The position numbers and the translations under genes are program-made. A stretch of 12,179 nucleotides of DNA from Amoeboradix gromovi X-113. Its lineage: Eukaryota > Fungi > Sanchytriomycota. Position 1 is the stretch's first letter. Each line of letters starts with the position of its first letter. The notes beneath the pieces were generated by a model. The model had not been told where the DNA came from. It saw only the letters and a program-made list of their open reading frames with translations, and made no database searches. The stretch spans positions 1 through 12,179 of the forward strand of contig JADGIF010000271.1 of assembly GCA_018985225.1 (NCBI GenBank). The letters run 5' to 3'. Below are positions 1 through 12,179 of this stretch, in pieces.

Positions 1-203
1 GAGTATTTAATTTTTGTATATCTTAAATGCACAGTTTTCAATTTCTGGGTTAAGCCATTTGTTTGCAAACCATTAAGCAACTTTTGCCAAATGGTTGACT
101 ATTGTTATTACGACTGTACGGACCCTGAATAAAATTATTGTCGGCATGTGAAAGCTTTTATTCTTTCATAAGGTATGAAGTGCTGCAAGATTGATATATT
201 TAT
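1..203 (-). pseudogene. Relic D: probable 5' end of a decayed copy of the repeated unknown ORF family (runs off the window edge)
   Basis: The minus-strand frame from 203 reads INISILQHFIPYERIKAF, aligning without gaps to relic A MLASHLVKFLIYEKIRNF (shared S4, L6, F9, Y12, E13, I15, F18; ATA where A and B have ATG). Stops follow soon after. Only one block supports it. Confidence 0.45.
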
Positions 204-235
204 TACAAGTTGCATCATAGTAGAAGTATCCCGCA

Positions 236-2677
236 TTAATTAAGTTTACAGCGGACGAGTTCTACGATTTCTCCATTAAGCGCATCTCGCATTTCTTGAT
301 CAGAGTCTTCAATCTTAATTCCAAGTTCTGCTAAAACCTCTAAGCCAGAAGAGCTTCTTGACTTCCCCTCATACAACTTGTGGTCATATCCGGAGTTACT
401 TTGTTTAAAATGGTAATGCTTCGAAGTTTTGTATTGCTTTTCAATAAAGTCACAAAACGGATGAGTGTGGGTTGATAAGTAGCACTGCAATTGCTTTCCG
501 TCCATGTCTTGCAGAAATTTTTTTAAAAATACTGCTGCGTCGCCAATGCTTGTGCTGCTCCCAAACTCATCCACCATAACTAATGATTTTCTTGTTGATT
601 TCTTCATTATGTCTGTTATTTCCTCTGCTTCTAAGTAAAAAGAACTTTTTCCATACTTGATCTCATCCGTTGTGCCTGTTCTTAAAAATATTCCGTCAAC
701 TGGCGACAATTGGCAGGATTCGCATGGTACACATCCACCCACTTGCCCTAGCAAGTATATTAGGGCAAGAGTCTTTAAGTAAGTTGACTTACCTCCCATA
801 TTGCAGCCCGAAATTGTGATTATGCTTTTCTTGTTAGCGCTGTCATTTGGGATAAATTCGTCAGAAAAAAAAGGATACGTGCCTTTTTTGAATTTATGTC
901 CTATTTCTCCCTCTACTCTTGGCAGTATCCAAGTAACTCCGTTTAGCAAGATTCTTACCACAGACCAAGATCTAGCCACGTCTATATTACCTAGAATCGA
1001 TTCAAACTCATCGATCTCTAAGTGGCTCTTGTTCAAACAATCTTGTATGGATTGAGCATAACATAACTTGATCTCAATCAACATATTTTGCAGTTCCATG
1101 TACTCTTTGTACATGACTAAAGACTCAGTCGAAGTGAATTGTTTATTGGACACTGATTTAGTCACTGGTTCCAAGTTCATCAGATTCTTTGGCTTCTTAA
1201 GCATTTTTAATCTTTCGCATGGCTTTTTACATTCTTCTTCCAATATGAAGCCATTCTGTGCTAGTTTTGTTGTAAAGCTATTCCATTTACCCAATGTTTC
1301 ATTGATACCAAATAGTAGCGCTTTGAGCCTATCATTTGTTGAAGTCTCATTAATTTCACCATTCTTTGTAAAATGCAAAGTAATCTCAGGAAAATAATTT
1401 TGCTGAACTTCTGTTAATCTATTAATCATAAAGCGAAGAGTTTTAACAGCGTCCTGGTCTTTGTTAAGGGGAAGGATTTCATTGCTCAAGTATTTAATGA
1501 GATGGGTTGTGTTGTGGTGCATATTTACAAATTTACACAGATGATCGTCAATGACAGGAAAGTGTATTTTTCCCATACTCATCGCAGCTATAAACCTGCT
1601 TCTATTGAATTTATCTATCTCCTGCAAGTTATATGCAGTTGCAACAAGATCTTGATTCAACTTCGCTTTGGGTGTGTTCCAGAATATTTTAGACTCTGCT
1701 TGCTTCTTTCTGATGTCCAGTGCATTTATAAATGGCCCTCTAAGTCTGTTATTGATTTCCGAATTCCCAAATGATGATACAGTTTTATTTATGAGGGGAA
1801 TTAATGATTTAAATTCCAATGCAGATTGCGTATAAAATGGAACTACTCCTCTGGTCTTGATGCTTTTGAGACTAAATAAGGAATCTGTGGGCTTTGATTT
1901 TGGTAATGACCAAGAGATGTATTCTTTCAATGCATTCTCTGGAGTGGTAAAAACATTTTCTCGCATCGGAGTGATTTGGATATTCAATAACTTTGCGAGA
2001 GATAGCACTTGCTTAGTTTTATGGTCATTGGTATAGTACTGTGGTCTAGCTAAATAAGGTTTGTTAGGTTTATAAGACAACTCCATCTCACTAAATGGAT
2101 TACTCGAATTCGGACCAAAATAAATCTCATCAGTAAGTAACCCCCCATTTATAATAATTTCAGAAGGTCTGTGAACCATGAAAATGTCCCAAATAGTCTT
2201 CTTTGAATGAAAAACGCAGTGATACGTTTTCTTTGTTTTTTTTGCCAAGTCCATAAACACTATGGTAGTTTCTCTTCCATGAAACTCTATTGAGCAAAGC
2301 GGTCCAAAGTCGTGATCAGAATGCAAAGGAGATAGTCCAACAGAACAATACATCTCTAAGCCGCGGCCAGTAACTCCGCCTTTACATGTCGTTTGAGAAT
2401 TAATCGCAAATCGCTTTTTCGCTTTAATCAAATCAAGAGTAACATCCTGAATTCCAGCTATTGGGAACCCTGTCATAACGTAATCCTTTTTATCCATAGA
2501 TCTCTTCGTGAGCTTGAAGTTTTTTAAATCATTTAGAAGAGCTGCGTCCAATCCGAGTACCTCGTAAAATCCACCTACTTGATTCATTCTTATAGTGTCT
2601 GGATACGTTTTAAAGTAGTTCATGTAGATTGTGCGAAGTACTGACATAGTTTGAAAAATAGTCGTTATAATGCACAT
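236..2677 (-). CDS. MutS-family mismatch repair ATPase with domain I (MSH1-like), divergent
   Basis: Domain I YPDTIRMNQVGGFYEVLGLDA (F-x-E motif) and MTGFP; domain III-like INKTVSSFG...RLRGPF...IRKKQ; Walker A ISGCNMGGKSTYLK; GKSSF; Walker B SLVMVDEFGSSTS; STH; C-terminal HKLYEG..SSSGLEVL..LGI. The true start may be the second ATG at 2647. Confidence 0.92.
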   Translation of the reverse strand: MCIITTIFQTMSVLRTIYMNYFKTYPDTIRMNQVGGFYEVLGLDAALLNDLKNFKLTKRSMDKKDYVMTGFPIAGIQDVTLDLIKAKKRFAINSQTTCKGGVTGRGLEMYCSVGLSPLHSDHDFGPLCSIEFHGRETTIVFMDLAKKTKKTYHCVFHSKKTIWDIFMVHRPSEIIINGGLLTDEIYFGPNSSNPFSEMELSYKPNKPYLARPQYYTNDHKTKQVLSLAKLLNIQITPMRENVFTTPENALKEYISWSLPKSKPTDSLFSLKSIKTRGVVPFYTQSALEFKSLIPLINKTVSSFGNSEINNRLRGPFINALDIRKKQAESKIFWNTPKAKLNQDLVATAYNLQEIDKFNRSRFIAAMSMGKIHFPVIDDHLCKFVNMHHNTTHLIKYLSNEILPLNKDQDAVKTLRFMINRLTEVQQNYFPEITLHFTKNGEINETSTNDRLKALLFGINETLGKWNSFTTKLAQNGFILEEECKKPCERLKMLKKPKNLMNLEPVTKSVSNKQFTSTESLVMYKEYMELQNMLIEIKLCYAQSIQDCLNKSHLEIDEFESILGNIDVARSWSVVRILLNGVTWILPRVEGEIGHKFKKGTYPFFSDEFIPNDSANKKSIITISGCNMGGKSTYLKTLALIYLLGQVGGCVPCESCQLSPVDGIFLRTGTTDEIKYGKSSFYLEAEEITDIMKKSTRKSLVMVDEFGSSTSIGDAAVFLKKFLQDMDGKQLQCYLSTHTHPFCDFIEKQYKTSKHYHFKQSNSGYDHKLYEGKSRSSSGLEVLAELGIKIEDSDQEMRDALNGEIVELVRCKLN

Positions 2678-2682
2678 CCGTT

Positions 2683-3273
2683 TTAATTAAATAAATCATT
2701 TATCGCAAATACATGAGTTATATCTCTGCAGCATACCCTCTACAGATTTTTCTAGCTACACAAAAGTCGACATCTTTTTTTCATAAAATGAAAATGGCTC
2801 CAAATCGTCTCATCCCAAATTTGTCAAATCTAAAGAAATCATTAAAAGTGTAACCATACTCTTTCTGAAGACCTATTTGATGTGTTTAAACACCTGGAAA
2901 GAGACTCGTATACAATTTAAAATGCATTCAAGACTCATTTACTATTTTCATATCTTCCTCAAAAGCAATCATCTCATCTTTTATGGAAAAGTCGCACCCA
3001 GTAAGGAAAAAGGCTTTTAAAGACATATTGGCCCTATTCCTAAAGACATTCCGGGTGCCTTAAATATTAATGCTACTGTAGTGGTAATTACAAATATGTG
3101 TACTATATGACAACCAGGTAACATGTGCTTGTACGCATCCCCGTTCAATCTCTCCTATGTGTAGTAGAATCCTGAGAAACCACTGTAACTGAGCGACCAG
3201 CTTTGTAAGTTTCTCTACGAAAATTCCTGATCTTTTCGTAGATCAGGAACTTAACGAGGTGACTAGCTAACAT
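2683..3273 (-). pseudogene. Relic A: decayed copy of the repeated unknown ORF family (~590 bp, internally deleted relative to B)
   Basis: The reverse complement aligns collinearly with 5847-6692: 25/31 nt (3225-3195 vs 5895-5925), exact GGATGAGACGATT (2815-2803 vs 6558-6570) and 37/49 nt at the 3' end. The ATG sits 48 nt before the NF codons in both copies, and both end LFN-TAA. Multiple stops and frameshifts. Confidence 0.8.
3214..3249. repeat. Two interlocking perfect 10-bp inverted repeats
   Basis: TCTACGAAAA (3214-3223) pairs with TTTTCGTAGA (3233-3242); TTCCTGATCT (3224-3233) pairs with AGATCAGGAA (3240-3249). Confidence 0.9.
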
Positions 3274-3308
3274 TAAATTCCACAAGACGTTTTATTTCAT
3301 ATTTTCAT

Positions 3309-5786
3309 TTATTGTTGTATAGTCGCATACCATTGTCGTTGAGTCCTAATTATGGCTAATATAGAAGTTACTCCTCTTCTTAATTCTCTTTGCACTCCCA
3401 CTGCCTCTGTTTGTATTCTTGCATTTTCAATAATTGTTTGGGCTTTGCTCATCATGTCCGCTGCAAATATTTTCATCTGTACTTTATATCCATTAAATGG
3501 TGAGGATTCCTCGTAGCATTTGTCAAACTCTACTTTGAGTTCATTCATATCACAGTTCTTGCACACAACCATCATTATTACTGAAAGTTCTCTCAAATGC
3601 ATAGTTGGAAACTTTTCAAGATTGGAAGAGAACATCAGAATTGGTAACACATGTATAAATCCTTTCAAGATCATATTACGAAGCAAATCAGGAAACTTTA
3701 TATTAGACCATGTGTTTGCATACTTTATGTGCTGTAAATCATTCACAGTGGCATCTATAATCTCTACCAAACACAAGAGCCAATCAATAACATTTCCAAC
3801 ATTCTCTGGTATTTCCGTCTGTTTCACTATCAAAGGAACACAAGAGCTGATGAAATGGTGCAATAGTTCTGCGTTACAATTATAGTATATCTCATAATGA
3901 CTGTGAAATAGCATTTGAAAGAAATCAAACAAATTTTCCAACTCCGACTCATCAATTTGTACAGTCAATAAATGCTCAAAGAGCTGCAGAGACAGCTTGT
4001 TCCACTCATCCAATTCATCCGTGTTTAGTTTGCAATATCCCTGTACTATGATGACTTCTAATGCGTGTAACTGACCTTTGAAGACAGGTAATCCCATTAG
4101 TTGATGAACCAGAGTCTTAAGGTCATGCAAAGATTGTGCATGCCTCGGCGCACTCTTGTAAAATTTGGCCAAAAAAACATTTCGAGGTAATTCCAGACTG
4201 AGAACCTTCTGAACAATTTGCAATGATAATTCATGATCTATAAACTGTATGAACAGCCCCAAAAACAGCACGCTATAGGGTTCATCTGTTATATGGTTCA
4301 GCATCTCATTAACTATGGAATTGATCATGGTAAGAAACTCAGTTCTATGCATCAAGTACTGACTACATCTGCAAAAGTTACTCAGGCCTTCTTTGTGCTT
4401 GATATCCCAGGAAAGTTGGAAAGATTGAATCATCATGTCCATTGACACTTTATTGCTAATATCAGAATTAGCAGTTGAAGCTGGAGTGTTTGTTTGAGTG
4501 CTTAAATTGCCAGCATCACTTAATAGAAAGCTGAGACTCCTTAACACAGCATTCATCATCTTGGGATCCTTACCCATTATCAGAGCACAGTCCTCGATCC
4601 ATTTCAAAGCTGTCGAAAGCCATTCAGAATCATTTTTGAAGTACGGAGTGATAGATTGAGTAGATAAGCATTTGGCGTAGACGACGCGTGGATTGTCATG
4701 AAACTGTTGATCTTGTAAAATTACGTTTAAATGCGGATAGGGTTGAGTACTTAATAGGTCATATCCAACACTGCGAATACAGTAATACTGTGCTTCAGCA
4801 TATATTGGGTTGCCCTGAAATTGATGAATAATGGAAAAGAAGGAATCCTGAAGTTCACGAAAGCAAAAAGAAAGTAGTTCAGAGAGATCCCTGCGATGTT
4901 GTCTAAAATCTTCTAATTGCTGATTATCAGTTGTGTCGGGATAGCAAATTGAAGGAAAGATTGTATTTAATAAATCACCGTAGATTGATAAAAAGAAGTC
5001 ATTTCTAGTGTGCTGCTTCTCAGAAATATATGACCAGAACAACAGAGTATGCAAAACTGGAAGACCAGATATCTGTATTAATAACTGCCAAAATTGCGAA
5101 TATTTTTGGGGATTTTTGCAAAGAAGAGAAACGTTGGACTCACCTAATTCGACGCACATATAAATAAAATCTAATAGATCTTCATTCTCTAGCTGAGAAT
5201 AGTTAACTTGAGTAGCAAATTGTGATAATTTTAATAAAAGTTGGTCCGAATTGAAATAGATAGCAGAAATTTCTGTCAAGAAAAGAAAATTCGATAAAGA
5301 GATGGCCTGGTCCACAAAAGGACTTAGTGAATCAAGAGAAATGCTAGATTTGTGTAGTAAACGACCGATTGTGTCCAATCCTAAAGGGTGGGGCGCGAGT
5401 ATAGCTAAATACTTTGACAATTGAATTGGAGGAAAGCTTTCTATTAAAGCACACTCGCTAAGTATATCCGGAATATTAGGGCAATGTTCTAACCAATCAA
5501 TGTGGTGTGCTAGAATTAAAGCCACAGCGTCAAAACACCGAATTTGGATTAGTTGTTCTAGTAGTTGCTTCTGATGCTCTTCAGCAAGAGTTGATAAGCC
5601 AAATTTGCATTTGTATTTTATGGTGGATATAGCGAATGCTTTTAAATATGGATTTTGATCTTGCAAATATTGGACACTGTTCCAGGCATCTGCTTGCTGC
5701 TGGTACTCATTTAGTTCTAAAAATAAATCCTTATTCGGACTTGAATAATATTGTTGTACTTTTTGAATAAATGTTGGACTCAACAT
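3309..5786 (-). CDS. Importin-beta superfamily karyopherin, Transportin-3/Mtr10/importin-13-like
   Basis: 825-aa Leu-rich helical protein. IBN_N-like start (LNEYQQQADAW...FAISTIKYK); TLLFWSYI, ICYP, DFRQHRRDLSELL and EAQYYCIRSVG match the spacing of Mtr10/TNPO3 blocks (FW..YP..FR.FR..D.L..EA.LF.LR). Confidence 0.75.
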   Translation of the reverse strand: MLSPTFIQKVQQYYSSPNKDLFLELNEYQQQADAWNSVQYLQDQNPYLKAFAISTIKYKCKFGLSTLAEEHQKQLLEQLIQIRCFDAVALILAHHIDWLEHCPNIPDILSECALIESFPPIQLSKYLAILAPHPLGLDTIGRLLHKSSISLDSLSPFVDQAISLSNFLFLTEISAIYFNSDQLLLKLSQFATQVNYSQLENEDLLDFIYMCVELGESNVSLLCKNPQKYSQFWQLLIQISGLPVLHTLLFWSYISEKQHTRNDFFLSIYGDLLNTIFPSICYPDTTDNQQLEDFRQHRRDLSELLSFCFRELQDSFFSIIHQFQGNPIYAEAQYYCIRSVGYDLLSTQPYPHLNVILQDQQFHDNPRVVYAKCLSTQSITPYFKNDSEWLSTALKWIEDCALIMGKDPKMMNAVLRSLSFLLSDAGNLSTQTNTPASTANSDISNKVSMDMMIQSFQLSWDIKHKEGLSNFCRCSQYLMHRTEFLTMINSIVNEMLNHITDEPYSVLFLGLFIQFIDHELSLQIVQKVLSLELPRNVFLAKFYKSAPRHAQSLHDLKTLVHQLMGLPVFKGQLHALEVIIVQGYCKLNTDELDEWNKLSLQLFEHLLTVQIDESELENLFDFFQMLFHSHYEIYYNCNAELLHHFISSCVPLIVKQTEIPENVGNVIDWLLCLVEIIDATVNDLQHIKYANTWSNIKFPDLLRNMILKGFIHVLPILMFSSNLEKFPTMHLRELSVIMMVVCKNCDMNELKVEFDKCYEESSPFNGYKVQMKIFAADMMSKAQTIIENARIQTEAVGVQRELRRGVTSILAIIRTQRQWYATIQQ

Positions 5787-5846
5787 TAAAATAAAGAATT
5801 TTTGTTTGGAAAAATATCCCCACTATTCGAATTACAAAAATTTACA

Positions 5847-6692
5847 ATGTCATTGTACTCCTTATAAAGTGTCTAGGTTTCTGAAAAAAATATTAATTTT
5901 CATTGGGAGACTGACAAAGCCGGTCATGCTTCACAGTAACTGACTTCACGGGAGCTTGGGGTGGGATTGAACAAGGATGCGTATAATTTAATATTTGAGA
6001 CCCAAACTGACAAATGTCCTCATTTCCAAGTAGGAGGAGCACCTAGAAACCACGCTAGGAATCCGAAAACTCCATGTCATCAGATACGAAAGTTTATCAG
6101 GAACAAGAATGGATTTACTGTGAACAAGACGACATTACAAGCATTAAGACAGAATATGAAAATGGTTATTTGCTGATATTGCAACATGTGCTAAGTGCTA
6201 GTCAGCCAAGGTATTTTGAAAAAGTTTGCCGCTGCATTCTTCATATTGAGAAAAGGCTTAAAGGAATAACAAGTGACTGACACATCTTTCCAGGAGGGCG
6301 TTCGGCTTAGGTTGGGGCCATTTTCTGAAATTGGGTCCCATGTGGTCTCTAACTAATTGCAAATGACAACTTGTACATATATGTCTCCAAACTGGTTACT
6401 TTAGAGCACCACTTCCTTAATATGTATGACTAATAAATACTTCATTATACTTCACCAATATCTCTCACTTTCTTTGGACGGTAATTCATTTCATACTATT
6501 TTCTGAGTGCAGAAGAGTTTCTATCTCTTGGTTGTATTTTTAGATTTGTCATATCCAGGATGAGACGATTGGGATTATTTGCAATTGACGAAAAACGATA
6601 TTATTGGGGTTTTACGTACTTAAAATGGCCCAGAAAAATTCAGTTGGAGCGATGTAGCTCATGTAATTATGATTCATAGTTTATTCAACTAA
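5847..6692 (+). pseudogene. Relic B: longest decayed copy of the repeated unknown ORF family (846 bp from ATG to TAA)
   Basis: Contains blocks shared with A (EK..NF..ET.KAG, LN.DAY, AP, LGI, MK.V, DETI, D..HV, LFN*) and with C (VL..QGIL, P.W, LI..T.K, DGN, WS.V.HV). At least nine in-frame stops plus frameshifts. The ORF-track calls 5961..6176 and 6074..6280 are fragments of it. Confidence 0.8.
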
Positions 6693-6737
6693 AAGGGATA
6701 GCTGTTTCCATTAAAATTCCAAATATATCATCGTAAC

Positions 6738-8627
6738 ATGGGAGATCCATTGATCATTGATTATGGTACTGGTAATTGTGAAGCAGGGTTTTTTAAAGAG
6801 CCGTCCTTAAAGTTTGTGAATGTGAATGAAAAGCGAGAAGACGGAATTTATGTGGGTTTGGATTGTAATACCAGACCTCGAAGCGCGTTCGATCGAGATT
6901 TCTTAACTTCACACGGCGCTTTGGATAATTCCTTAGATTACATATTTTCTCACCTCAAATTGAAGGAACCGCCTAAAATTGCAATGTCAGAAACATTTTG
7001 TAATCCTTATAGCTGTAGGAATATATCAAATGAAGTTTTATTTGAATGCTTCAATATTCCAAAAGTCTCCTATTTTGTTGATACTTTGACTTCTTTCAAT
7101 GAGTTTGAAAATAAACCGTTGAATAGCGTAGTTATTGACCTGGGCAACTTCAGCACTCGGGTTGTCGGAATGAGAAAAGAGAAAAACTACCACATGCCTG
7201 TGTATGAAGTGTCTAAATGTATCCCTTTTGGAAAAAGCGATGCTGTAGACACTTTAATGAAGCTGCTGCAGCTAAAATATCCAAATTTTCCAATTGTTGT
7301 TCAGCAATTTGAAGCACAATCAATGTTTGAAAAGCATTCAGAGGTTGCAATGGACTATAATGCAGTTTTAAAGGACATGGCAGATCCCAAAAATTTATCA
7401 AAATACAATGTCACAAAGCAGTATCCATTTCTACCAGAAGAATCTTTAACGGAGGAGGAGATATTGTATACAAAAGAAAAGCAAATGGCTAATAGAAAGA
7501 GATTACGAGAAATGAATTTGGCTAAAAGAATAGAAAAGCTAGAATCGTTCAGAAATACCTTTGCTGATCTGAGAAAGTTTATGGAAAAGTTAAACGGATT
7601 GAAGAAGTCTGAAAGAATGAAGCTGTTGAAAGAGAACAACTACAAGTCATTTGATGATGTAGAAGAATTCTCAAGATCAGTTGAAATGCAAATAGCGAAG
7701 CTGGAAATAAGTGTTGCTAAAAGTGAAGAGTTGATGATTGCCATGGACGTAGACAATGCAGTAAATGAAGCAAGTAAAGACGAGTTATCTGAGGAATATA
7801 TGGAAGAATTAAAATCTAGACGTAAGCTGTTACTTGGACAGTTGGAAGTAAGAAAACTTGATACCACCAGGCGATCTGCTTCTAGCAACAATAGAATGCG
7901 TGGAATGGCTAGAATAATTGACGAAAGTAACAAAGAAACCCCAATCGGTGACAACTTTGGCATGGTGGACTCAGACTGGAACGTTTATCACGATATAGTA
8001 TCATCTTTATTCACTTAGAAATCTAAAAACGGACAGGGTCTGGATATTGAGATAGAGTTGGGCGAGATAGAAGATATTTTAGTGAGACACGATCCCTCTT
8101 CATTGGCTAATAAACCCAATATTCAAAGTTGGTTAGCCCACAATGGACCAGCGCCAGTAATGTTTGAACTACATGGAAGAACAGTGGAGAACGTAGAGTT
8201 CTATAACAAAAACCAAATGCTCGCTCACCAACTGCATTTAAATGTCGAGAGATTTAGAATCCCAGAATCTTTGTTTAAGCCATATTTGGTTGGTTTGGAT
8301 GAAAGAGGTATCAGCGAGATACTAGAGCACATGTACAAATCGCATAAGTATGATACAATATACCTGACTGGATGCATGTCAAAGTTGCCGCAATTGGCAA
8401 AAAGAATTCAGTATGATTTAAAATCCCTTTTACCAACTGGCACAAATATTAGTGTTATAAATGACACAACCTATCAATCATATATTGGGGCATACAATTA
8501 TTACAGAAATGCACCGGAAAGTGTGTATGTAACCAGGAAAGAATATCAAGAATTTGGTGGAGAATATCTGAAAGAGCATGCTATGGGCAATAGATATTCA
8601 TATTACGAAGAAGATGCTATGGAATAA
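6738..8627 (+). CDS. ARP5: Actin-related protein 5 (INO80 complex), join(6738..7997,8019..8627), ~622 aa
   Basis: PLIIDYG, RSAFDRD, LDYIFSHL, SETFCNPYSCR..EVLFECFNIPKVSY, LLQLKYP, QYPF, a coiled-coil insertion, DNFG..DSDWNVY, HQLHLNVERFRIPE, YLTG, and C-terminal TRKEYQEFGGEYLKEHAMGN. The two ORF-track halves are in the same frame. Confidence 0.93.
7998..8018 (+). other. 21-nt spliceosomal intron in ARP5
   Basis: GTATCATCTTTATTCACTTAG: GT..AG, phase 0, possible branch motif TTCAC. Removing it eliminates the only stop between the two halves and gives ...VYHDI|KSKNG...ELGEIEDILVRHDP. Confidence 0.8.
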
Positions 8628-8630
8628 TCA

Positions 8631-8645
8631 AATAAACGCTTTATT
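8631..8645. terminator. Candidate bidirectional polyadenylation signal between convergent genes
   Basis: AATAAA-CGC-TTTATT lies within the 23-nt gap between the stops at 8627 and 8651. Confidence 0.55.
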
Positions 8646-8650
8646 AACAT

Positions 8651-9436
8651 TCATGGACCTGGATTGCAGAACTGAATTTTGGACTCATAACAGTAGATTT
8701 GAGGGGGATATATATCGTTAAGAACTAAACAACTATGAAATGAAGGAATTAGATCGTTCAAATCTACATTGACTAGATCTTTTTCCATTAGTTTATTAGT
8801 TAAATAATTCAATGTTCGAAAGGGATTAAAGGAATCAGTTTGCAATATACGTAAATGTCGAGAGACATGAGAAAGTATAATGTTAGAAGGTTTATATCCG
8901 CATATTAACAAGAAGCAATAAAGAGTATCCACTGCATCCAACGGACGATGCATCCAGACATACTGAAGTACCTTTTTCCGATTCTTTAGGAGCTCTTTTC
9001 TAATTAGCACAAGGGTTTTGTATAGCTGAGACATTTTAAGTAGCAGCAGCTTTGTAATCAGCTTAATTTTCTTTTCCTTCGCAATTATATGTTCTAAACT
9101 TCCATCTATGATATTGCATAAGAGAGAATCCAATCGGTTAGGCTTCAATGGATTAAACTCTGTTTTTTCTAAAATGTCCACATATAAAGGTTTATAGAGT
9201 GGGTAGTGAGGCCATAACGACATATTGCTATTGGGTGCAGCTAAAACATTCAAACTGATTTCTTGATGTATCTGAGGAAATAAGCCATTGAAGTATTGTA
9301 ATTGCTGAGTTTTTAATCTTCTTTTTTCAAGTGTTTTTACAATGTTTTCCACTTTCATGTCTTCATTTTCTATTTGATCAACTTCAAAATCTGCGTTGAC
9401 GGAAGCAGCAAAATCAAATGATGAGTCACTCTCCAT
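8651..9436 (-). CDS. Hypothetical protein, 261 aa, acidic N-terminus
   Basis: Uninterrupted 786-nt ATG-TGA ORF in AT-rich DNA, with no overlap with neighbours and AATAAA just downstream of the stop. No family recognised. Confidence 0.75.
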   Translation of the reverse strand: MESDSSFDFAASVNADFEVDQIENEDMKVENIVKTLEKRRLKTQQLQYFNGLFPQIHQEISLNVLAAPNSNMSLWPHYPLYKPLYVDILEKTEFNPLKPNRLDSLLCNIIDGSLEHIIAKEKKIKLITKLLLLKMSQLYKTLVLIRKELLKNRKKVLQYVWMHRPLDAVDTLYCFLLICGYKPSNIILSHVSRHLRILQTDSFNPFRTLNYLTNKLMEKDLVNVDLNDLIPSFHSCLVLNDIYPPQIYCYESKIQFCNPGP

Positions 9437-9588
9437 GATTCAGAACTTTTTAAATTCTCATAGATTAGTGGATGCAGAATAATCGCCCTTACTTGAGGTC
9501 ATTCGTACCATCTGTATGCAATGAGGCATTAAAACGTCACAGCCAAGAAGCATGAATTTTTTATAAGGACGTTTATCTTCGGTTTCAT

Positions 9589-10089
9589 ATGGAAGACTTA
9601 GCAGCCCAACAACTAGGTAAAGCACTTAATGTCATTCTTCGGGAAAAGAGTGGGCAAACAAAATTTAAGACTTTGGGTCAATACTCACAGCAACCGACCG
9701 GTACCAATATTTTTATTCGGGGTTTGCCTGCTTACATGACAGATGACTGCCTGTATAAGTTAGCAAGATGTTACGGCGAAATCCAATCCTCAAAATGCAT
9801 CATTGATAGTCGAACTCAGCGTTGCAAAGGATTTGGTTTCGTAATGTTTAGTAACCAAGAACAAGCACAAGCATGCATTGATGGTTTAAAGAAGATAGGA
9901 TTATGGACTAGTTTGGCCAACGTACAAACAGCAAATAAACCTGATATATTAACACCTACTTCATCTCAGTCCGTTATTGACTATTGCTGGGGAATAAATG
10001 ACATCGTCGCTAATAATAGGTCTGAGTGGAACTTGAAGTCAATGGATGTGTCCTTTGATAATCTGAAGTCTAGGTTCTCGTTGTTTTAA
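9589..10089 (+). CDS. RNA-binding protein with one RRM, RBMS/MSSP (alan shepard)-like
   Basis: RNP2 TNIFIRGLP, GEIQSSKCIID..TQRC, RNP1 KGFGFVMF, and ACIDGL match RRM1 of the RBMS/MSSP family. Confidence 0.85.
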   Translation: MEDLAAQQLGKALNVILREKSGQTKFKTLGQYSQQPTGTNIFIRGLPAYMTDDCLYKLARCYGEIQSSKCIIDSRTQRCKGFGFVMFSNQEQAQACIDGLKKIGLWTSLANVQTANKPDILTPTSSQSVIDYCWGINDIVANNRSEWNLKSMDVSFDNLKSRFSLF

Positions 10090-10141
10090 TATAGTTCTGT
10101 TGATCCTTGCGACGAATTTACAAGCTGGTCGCCATTTAATT

Positions 10142-10153
10142 AATAAATTTATT
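10142..10153. terminator. Candidate bidirectional polyadenylation signal between convergent genes
   Basis: Perfect palindrome AATAAATTTATT between the RRM gene stop (10089) and the BCS1 stop (10159). Confidence 0.55.
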
Positions 10154-10158
10154 TTTCG

Positions 10159-11433
10159 TCATAAATCTACTATTGCTTTCCAATTATTCTTGTTTTCAAT
10201 AAACAAACCCTGAAGATGTGCTGGTGATATGTCGCCATATCTTTTCCTCAATAGGCCAACAAATACCTGGGCATTCCCCGAGCTTTCTGTATAAAAGCGC
10301 TTGAACATCTCCTGTATTTGCAGATTATCAGCATTGCTCATCTCAATCATTTTGTCCACTCTTCCAGGTCTAATCAAAGCTGGGTCAAGCCTATCCAAAT
10401 GATTTGTGGTCATAAAAATTAAACGCTCTTCAGAAGCGATAACACCATCCAGAGCATTCAACAAGCCGCTGAAAGTAACCATACTAGAGAAGCCTTCCTC
10501 ACTGGCTTTTCTCTCAAGAAAAGCTGCATCAACATCTTCAATTAGCAAAATAGACCTGGAAGGAGCATTAACAAGCAGATAAGCCAGTCGATCATCAGTT
10601 AGTCCTCGCTCACTTAGGTTAACTACGCAAATATTGTATTCGAGTTGTCCAGATAGCGCCTGAATGAATGAACTCTTTCCTGTTCCTGGAGTGCCATGCA
10701 AAAGGTACCCCCGTCTATATGGGATACCACGGTCATGGTACCAATTTTGGGACTTCAGAAACTGCTGAACATCAGTCAGAATATCCTGAGTTTGATTTTG
10801 CTTTAGAACAACACTCTCCAAAGGCCTTTTTCTCCTAGGTTGACCAAAGGGCTTCCAATCTGGGCCTTTGCTCATATAAACTACAGTTTTATTATGTTCT
10901 TTCTTCATGACATGAAGTTTAGCATCAGATATCATGTCTGTGAAAAGAAACTTCTGAGGTGACAAGGTTGTCACAGTAACAGACTCGAAAGGCTGATTGT
11001 TTGCAAAGTCTATGACTTCCTCATTACGATTTCTTTCAATTTGGAACCAATGGTTCTTATATTTAAACAGATGCTTACCAACGCCCGGCTGAAAATTCAG
11101 ATGAGCCTCAACAGCGCCCTGATCATGGTTCTTCAATACCGTCTGTACAGTCAATTTATTGCAAAACATATTCTTATTTTTGAATATATTCTTTTCGTAA
11201 TGATTAGAAAACCACTGCATAAACCAAAAAAAAGATTTGTCTCTGTTACTGAGTTCCAAACTTACAAAGGCTCTTTCTCTTGCAAAAATAGCGGCAATTC
11301 TCGCCGATTTCGTTAGAACAGCAATACCAGTACCAAGTCCCATTATTCCAAGTATTCCATATTCCGAAAGCTGTTCTGAGATTTTAGAATTGGCGAAAGA
11401 AAAAGGTGAATTGGATTCAGACATGGGGGACAT
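10159..11433 (-). CDS. BCS1: Mitochondrial AAA chaperone BCS1 (Rieske protein insertion into complex III)
   Basis: TM segment GILGIMGLGTGIAVL; BCS1_N blocks PGVGKH, PFESVTVTTL, WKPFGQPRRKRPLESVVL; WYHDRGIPYRRGYLLHGTPGTGKSS; LLIEDVD; VTFSGLLNALDGV; MTTNH..LDPALIRPGRVD. The track start at 11454 is a TTG; the first ATGs are at 11433 and 11424. Confidence 0.97.
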   Translation of the reverse strand: MSPMSESNSPFSFANSKISEQLSEYGILGIMGLGTGIAVLTKSARIAAIFARERAFVSLELSNRDKSFFWFMQWFSNHYEKNIFKNKNMFCNKLTVQTVLKNHDQGAVEAHLNFQPGVGKHLFKYKNHWFQIERNRNEEVIDFANNQPFESVTVTTLSPQKFLFTDMISDAKLHVMKKEHNKTVVYMSKGPDWKPFGQPRRKRPLESVVLKQNQTQDILTDVQQFLKSQNWYHDRGIPYRRGYLLHGTPGTGKSSFIQALSGQLEYNICVVNLSERGLTDDRLAYLLVNAPSRSILLIEDVDAAFLERKASEEGFSSMVTFSGLLNALDGVIASEERLIFMTTNHLDRLDPALIRPGRVDKMIEMSNADNLQIQEMFKRFYTESSGNAQVFVGLLRKRYGDISPAHLQGLFIENKNNWKAIVDL

Positions 11434-12179
11434 TGCTCCATTGATTGTATACAAAAATCGGGATATCCTCTATAAAACCTAGGCTGGAGTGAGTAACAGA
11501 GAATGACAAGAAGAAGAAGCTTTTCATACTAGATATCCAAAACTCATCGAATAGGTTCCAAACCTACAACACAAATATTATAGCAGACCCACAACATTGG
11601 CAAACTCGAATTAAGTAATCAAGTAAATCAGCCAAATTATTCCAGCGTTTCCATCCGCAAAACAAGACCGGAAAGTGAATGAAACATAACAACCTGATTT
11701 ATAGGTGACGAGTATAAGGGCACACAGCGATCTCATAGAGTGCCAGCTGGGATGCGGTCGTGTGAACGTGCTTTATAAAAAATCTTCAAGGCGTGTAAAG
11801 TTTGCTAACAAATGGCAGAAGACCAGACTGGCAAAGACGAGGAATTGATAACAAATTTTTGTCGCCAAAGGCATAGGTGATAAGTTGTCAAAATGCCTTA
11901 ATTAGCCAGAACTACTTTTAGAGTCATTTATTTGGGACACCAAATATAAAAACTAGACTAACTCGTTTTTAAAGTAGGTGCACCATACAGAGGAAATGCT
12001 ATCATTAATAAAAGATCTTCTATTATACCAATTTTCTTTCATTACTTTCAATCCCCTCTTCATAATAAAAGTAGAAGACCCTGCATCTCGTTCAAATATA
12101 TGAGGTCTTTGAGCATCTAAGCAAAAGGTGCATTTTCTTAGACGGTACTCTTTTCTAGAGTCATTTTGCAATGTTATAC
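11400..12179 (-). pseudogene. Relic C: more diverged decayed copy of the repeated unknown ORF family (5' end beyond the window)
   Basis: Collinear blocks: IGI..PLYGA (12032; A LGI..SLLGA, B LGI..SLSGT), KNELV*F (A KDEMIAF), VLAN*GILT (11912-11886; B VLVSQGILK 6195-6221), PSW..LILVTYK..DGN (11751-11647; B PNW..LICMTNK..DGN), VWNLFDE, and WSNVPHV (11440; B WSDVAHV 6645). Confidence 0.72.

Follow-up and report, generated by a model that had tools for sequence, protein, structure and literature searches.

Gene spacers of the compact Amoeboradix gromovi genome hold decayed copies of a probable Fanzor2-type transposon and other miniature elements

Fanzor2 proteins are the eukaryotic form of TnpB, an RNA-guided nuclease, and IS607-family elements combine a serine recombinase, TnpA, with TnpB. 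In the chytrid Spizellomyces punctatus, Saito et al. 2023 described Fanzor ghost loci, 134 in number, which are short gene-less derivatives that outnumber the gene-bearing copies and that keep the ends of the element together with a guide-RNA scaffold region beside the right end (PMC10432273). The Spu-1 ghosts of that species are of the Fanzor1 type, measure ~550 nt, have no Fz ORF and carry inverted repeats of 30 nt on either side (PMC10432273). A search of the literature found no paper tying Fanzor to sanchytrids, and the words 'transpos' and 'repeat' are absent from the main text of the genome paper of the sanchytrid Amoeboradix gromovi (PMC8371127). In a single contig of this fungus we found two spacers, 2678-3308 and 5787-6737, each of which very probably contains an old and dead, non-autonomous ghost derived from an IS607-type transposon with a Fanzor2 nuclease gene. 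The ~615-bp family to which both belong resembles the S. punctatus ghosts in that its ends are present, its nuclease gene is gutted and its copies are many, far outnumbering those that bear the gene; the region beside its right end may likewise correspond to a guide-RNA scaffold. In contrast to the Spu-1 ghosts, the family shows no inverted repeats, has recombinase-linked Fanzor2 kin and still carries ~144 codons from the end of the nuclease gene. It is also the more numerous, with ~560 candidate places in a genome of less than half the size, against the 134 ghost loci of S. punctatus (PMC10432273).

The window, that is, the whole stretch of 12,179 nt that was analysed, corresponds to one entire contig of A. 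gromovi X-113 (JADGIF010000271.1), in a compact genome of 10.5 Mb with 36% GC; the published values for the assembly are 10.5 Mb and 36.27% GC (PMC8371127). Its long ORFs include housekeeping genes for MutS, an actin-like protein, an RRM protein and BCS1. Two other ORFs, one of 825 aa at 3309-5786 (minus strand) and one of 261 aa at 8651-9436 (minus strand), showed no Pfam match. The actin-like gene appears as two same-frame ORFs, 6738-8018 and 8058-8627, parted by a single TAG. The stop that splits them is held within a 21-nt stretch (7998-8018) with GTA first and TAG last; this stretch resembles a very short intron, and the two ORFs probably form a single gene. When the window was scanned for Rfam families and tRNAs, nothing relevant emerged, the one sub-threshold match being to an S15 leader inside BCS1.

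A preliminary description of the window had proposed that decayed ORFs of one hidden family, sharing collinear peptide blocks, fill its four larger gaps. This relationship was confirmed for two of the gaps and not for the others. The intervals 2678-3308 (minus strand) and 5787-6737 (plus strand) share three collinear patches with 74-81% identity over 31-58 nt (blastn, E 2e-7 to 1e-3), and neither blastn nor tblastx among the four intervals linked 11455-12179 or 1-235 to them. So weak a pairwise similarity could be taken for chance resemblance between AT-rich spacers. The probability of this is negligible, since the family has hundreds of members and since profiles of its old subfamily, built solely from copies elsewhere in the genome with the window's own copies left out, matched at 2675-2847 (E 7e-38), 3102-3288 (E 8e-32), 6518-6723 (E 2e-33) and 5846-5993 (E 1e-9). 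No profile of the family, the independent ones included, matched anything in 11455-12179 or 1-235. Genome-wide, the first peptide block (window 3148-3291, minus strand) recurred at 373 candidate places, 150 of which were scored. Because direct comparison, independent profiles and genome-wide recurrence agree, sequence comparison establishes that the family is real and that it has two members in the window, not four. Rather than a single family, the four intervals contain three different elements and unique sequence (Table 1); in the interval 11455-12179, sequence repeated in the genome is confined to the final ~250 bases, which belong to another family. Not all of the supposed common blocks are part of the relationship: in 5787-6737 the middle ones (LGI..SL.G, DMK.V and VL..QGIL) fall within a nested insert and have no counterpart in 2678-3308, and the leading 'M..S.L' residues lie beyond the end of the element and do not belong to it.

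Table 1. Coordinates of the elements and of the unrelated spacer sequences in the window
Feature	Coordinates	Strand	Remarks
Contig start, not a member of the family	1..235		Unique; its sole match in the genome is itself; no profile match
Copy A, old decayed full-length ghost	2702..3261	+	Left end about 2702-2859; tail and right end 3103-3261
Copy B, decayed ghost split by nested insert	5858..6704	-	Left end about 6521-6704; tail and right end 5858-5989
Nested miniature element of a different, older family	5991..6340	+	~350 bp; terminal inverted repeats; boundaries and inverted ends from alignment
Spacer upstream of BCS1, not a member of the family	11455..11932		No family, Rfam or tRNA match
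Right-hand half of a young miniature element of ~460-520 bp	11933..12179	-	Truncated by the contig end; 29-bp terminal inverted repeats (GGGAC...GTCCC)

When the copies were aligned with their flanks, the similarity started and stopped at fixed bases, outside of which the sequences were unrelated. Such sharp shared ends with unrelated flanks indicate a mobile element of ~615 bp, dispersed in the genome. The ghost copies are uniform in size and organization: a left end of ~200 bp abuts the final ~144 nuclease codons, which encode RuvC-III and the zinc ribbon, and the reading frame of this ORF continues into the right end of the element. Internal deletions are nevertheless common within the family. 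No inverted relationship exists between the left and right termini, nor do duplicated bases occur in the flanks (21-28 copies aligned with flanks), in agreement with the lack of TIRs and TSDs initially noted in the window.

Although no known domain had been recognised at first, the TnpB/Fanzor zinc ribbon (TNB, PF07282) was recognised on the opposite strand, the ghost ORF matching it with an E value of 1e-19. In a scan of the genome PF07282 had 560 candidate places, 150 of them scored above the cut-off, mostly open frames of 100-150 aa, and the PF07282 places were located 25-30 nt from matches to the first peptide block and always on the other strand (e.g. C573, C780, C538, C364 and C412). The best of the peptide blocks originally described is the exact codon-aligned reverse complement of the Fanzor tail plus right end. 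The frames first read are therefore antisense shadows, the coding remnant being placed on the opposite strand.

The preliminary description had also offered, as an alternative to a selfish element, the mass death of an expanded, lineage-specific family of host genes, which would be read on that first strand. The collinear peptide-like blocks shared by two intervals are what such a family would leave, and many copies do hold open frames of 40-100 aa on this strand. Yet the similarity opens abruptly at one fixed base with unrelated sequence upstream, as expected for a transposon terminus, and the frame ends at the same stop codon in most copies. Furthermore, the longest open frame seen on that strand has 126 aa, the sole recognisable domain is on the other strand, and the blocks common to the window copies lack codon periodicity. 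On these grounds we reject the host gene family, whose probability we consider very low. The other half of the proposal, a once very high-copy selfish element filling otherwise tiny gene spacers, agrees with the presence of the family at hundreds of places.

Selection at the protein level, which had been postulated from the synonymous nature of many differences, was found in another place and on another strand than proposed. Codon periodicity was tested with 62 copies, none of them ascertained by protein score, and divergence was measured from the family majority. In the nuclease part, read in the Fanzor frame, divergence at codon positions 1, 2 and 3 was 0.165, 0.149 and 0.235 (chi-square 60), pointing to selection in the source lineages. 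No codon periodicity appeared in the left end (p = 0.36) or in the tail and right end (p = 0.22), and detectable similarity between copies A and B is limited to these regions. Changes private to single copies were flat over the three codon positions (65, 51 and 55), as expected for neutral decay after insertion. Eighteen copies have the same deletion junction, and their shared variable sites numbered 14, 11 and 37 at codon positions 1, 2 and 3; their private sites were more even (21, 27 and 30). It is conceivable, if unlikely, that the truncated 144-codon ORF came under purifying selection after the deletion, as a small zinc-ribbon protein, or was continually refreshed by recombination with working Fanzor genes. 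If this were true, the 'gene-less' elements would be more than mere relics.

Copy A takes up the gap that runs from the MutS start to the stop codon of the 825-aa gene. Against the family profile (nhmmer) it matched at 2687-2859 (model 35-210, E 2e-11) and at 3103-3263 (model 478-643, E 7e-21). In tblastn searches with ghost ORFs only its tail was recognisable (3136-3252, plus strand, E 3e-5), and its nuclease part, at about 2860-3102, has decayed past recognition; the Fanzor origin assigned to copy A accordingly rests on its two ends. Copy B preserves more of the coding remnant, matching the family profile at 6634-6521 (E 1.5e-5), 6475-6337 (E 1.4e-19) and 5989-5857 (E 3e-7). The ghost ORFs recovered its zinc-ribbon domain at 6476-6336 (minus strand, E 1e-6) and a further piece at 5991-5950 (minus strand), and the zinc-ribbon remnant (6337-6475) bears three stops. 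The nested element sits between the DRDHM and IKY..HP motifs of this remnant.

Both copies might have arrived as full-length autonomous Fanzor2 elements and lost their interiors in place, instead of being inserted in an already shortened form. The interior of copy A cannot be aligned to the ghost model, which would suit such a loss, and so would the frequent internal deletions in the family. However, at 560 bp for copy A and, once the nested insert is subtracted, 495 bp for copy B, both have the size of a ghost (~615 bp in the family); in both, as in the ghosts, the left end is followed by the zinc ribbon and then by the tail; and old-subfamily copies elsewhere in the genome (L022 and L028) align along the whole length of copy A. 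Loss in place is thus quite improbable, and we retain the reading of copies A and B as ghosts that were short when they inserted. The possibility that the ~350-bp insert of copy B represents the part missing from copy A was discarded, as the insert belongs to a separate family with inverted repeats of its own.

A distance of 24 nt separates the left end of copy A from the MutS ATG at 2677, and one of 33 nt separates that of copy B from the actin-like ATG at 6738. A preference for gene starts was not found family-wide: in a crude survey that ignored mini-introns, flanks with a start within 120 nt numbered 4 of 34 at the left end and 9 of 61 at the right end.

The family appears to be made up almost entirely of gutted ghosts, because the N-terminal 459 aa of Fanzor matched at only ~20 places compared with the 560 candidates for the zinc ribbon. 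Among the 150 scored zinc-ribbon matches the only long intact Fanzor2 ORF was that of locus L075 (G000:C542), with 590 aa inside an open frame of 672 aa. The C-terminus of this protein is 58% identical to the ghost ORF (E 3e-35). The domains present at the locus are Resolvase (E 1e-9), HTH_OrfB_IS605 and TNB, and the resolvase ORF lies upstream, overlapping the start of the Fanzor ORF in another frame. The best solved relative was the TnpB-like protein L79 of mimivirus (9b0l, E 5e-16). A 306-aa ORF located downstream gave only a weak wHTH match. Judged by its ORFs and domains, L075 is an autonomous relative of the ghost family with the IS607/Fanzor2 arrangement. The L075 termini showed no match to the ghost termini, and the direct parent of the family was not found. 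Our family resembles IS607/Fanzor2 systems in its lack of terminal inverted repeats and target-site duplications, and its relative L075 has their combination of Resolvase, HTH_OrfB_IS605 and TNB; it differs from them in that the window copies are non-autonomous and dead and a parent with matching ends was not recovered.

Concerning the right end, four hairpins were predicted in young copies on the Fanzor strand, where the consensus energy was -19.9 kcal/mol versus -9.2 kcal/mol on the other strand. Covariation was weak, with 84.9% of cells paired compared with 83.8% in shuffles and double-sided changes in 18 cells where 10 were expected. RNAalifold applied to all 33 right ends yielded no consensus structure.

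From these results a history of the two spacers may be proposed. The copies would have moved in trans with the help of a recombinase supplied by rare autonomous elements, with a conserved right end that may once have specified a guide-RNA scaffold, and they would have decayed neutrally after insertion. Copy B was later struck by a second miniature element, and the contig end bears a third, young one. The nested and contig-end elements suggest that layers of insertions accumulated in the only sites tolerated by a very compact genome. The window adds two old ghost copies and an example of nesting to the family. Elsewhere in the genome, ghost copies (L052, L072, L071 and others) are often nested in or beside one another and the two miniature families, as in L034, where layers were observed at 1292-1754 and 1866-2225; such nested and adjacent copies indicate that the spacers fill up by successive insertions.

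The nested and contig-end elements come from families other than that of the ghosts. The family of the nested element has 158 candidate copies, at least 44 of them scored, with 70-84% identity; its profile matched at 5965-6368 (E 6e-117), and a reverse-strand self match (6049-5975) revealed the inverted repeat. Long open frames beside two copies of this family (L010 and L018) were considered as Fanzor genes and turned out to be read-through into host genes. The contig-end family is larger, with 941 candidate places, and the 40 copies scored are 93-97% identical; full-length copies show the inverted repeats. The CxxC...FERD ORF remnant of the contig-end element shares homology with its counterpart in the nested family (E 7e-10). 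Neither remnant had a Pfam or PDB match, and an hhalign comparison between the miniature-family remnant and the Fanzor2 C-terminus aligned the ERD/DRD motif only (probability 0.3%). Both elements resemble MITEs in being short, high-copy and non-autonomous with inverted repeats at their ends, and they differ from MITEs in retaining this short ORF remnant.

What had looked like a hidden dead gene family would therefore consist of decayed mini-transposons of the Fanzor2 type, a known kind of element, together with two further miniature elements. For annotation, this implies that hundreds of short spacer ORFs are transposon shadows, some of them antisense, and should not be called genes. It also implies that a fungal genome as compact as this one can bear an unusually dense load of Fanzor-derived and other miniature elements: the ~560 and ~940 candidate places together would total several percent of the 10.5 Mb.

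The spacer upstream of BCS1 showed one further similarity. A patch of ~100 nt at about 11704-11799, without a match among the repeat families, Rfam families or tRNAs, shares 76% identity with a single other place in the genome (G000:C370:2688-2789, locus L086), and the similarity to this locus includes a second short collinear patch near window positions 11460-11513.
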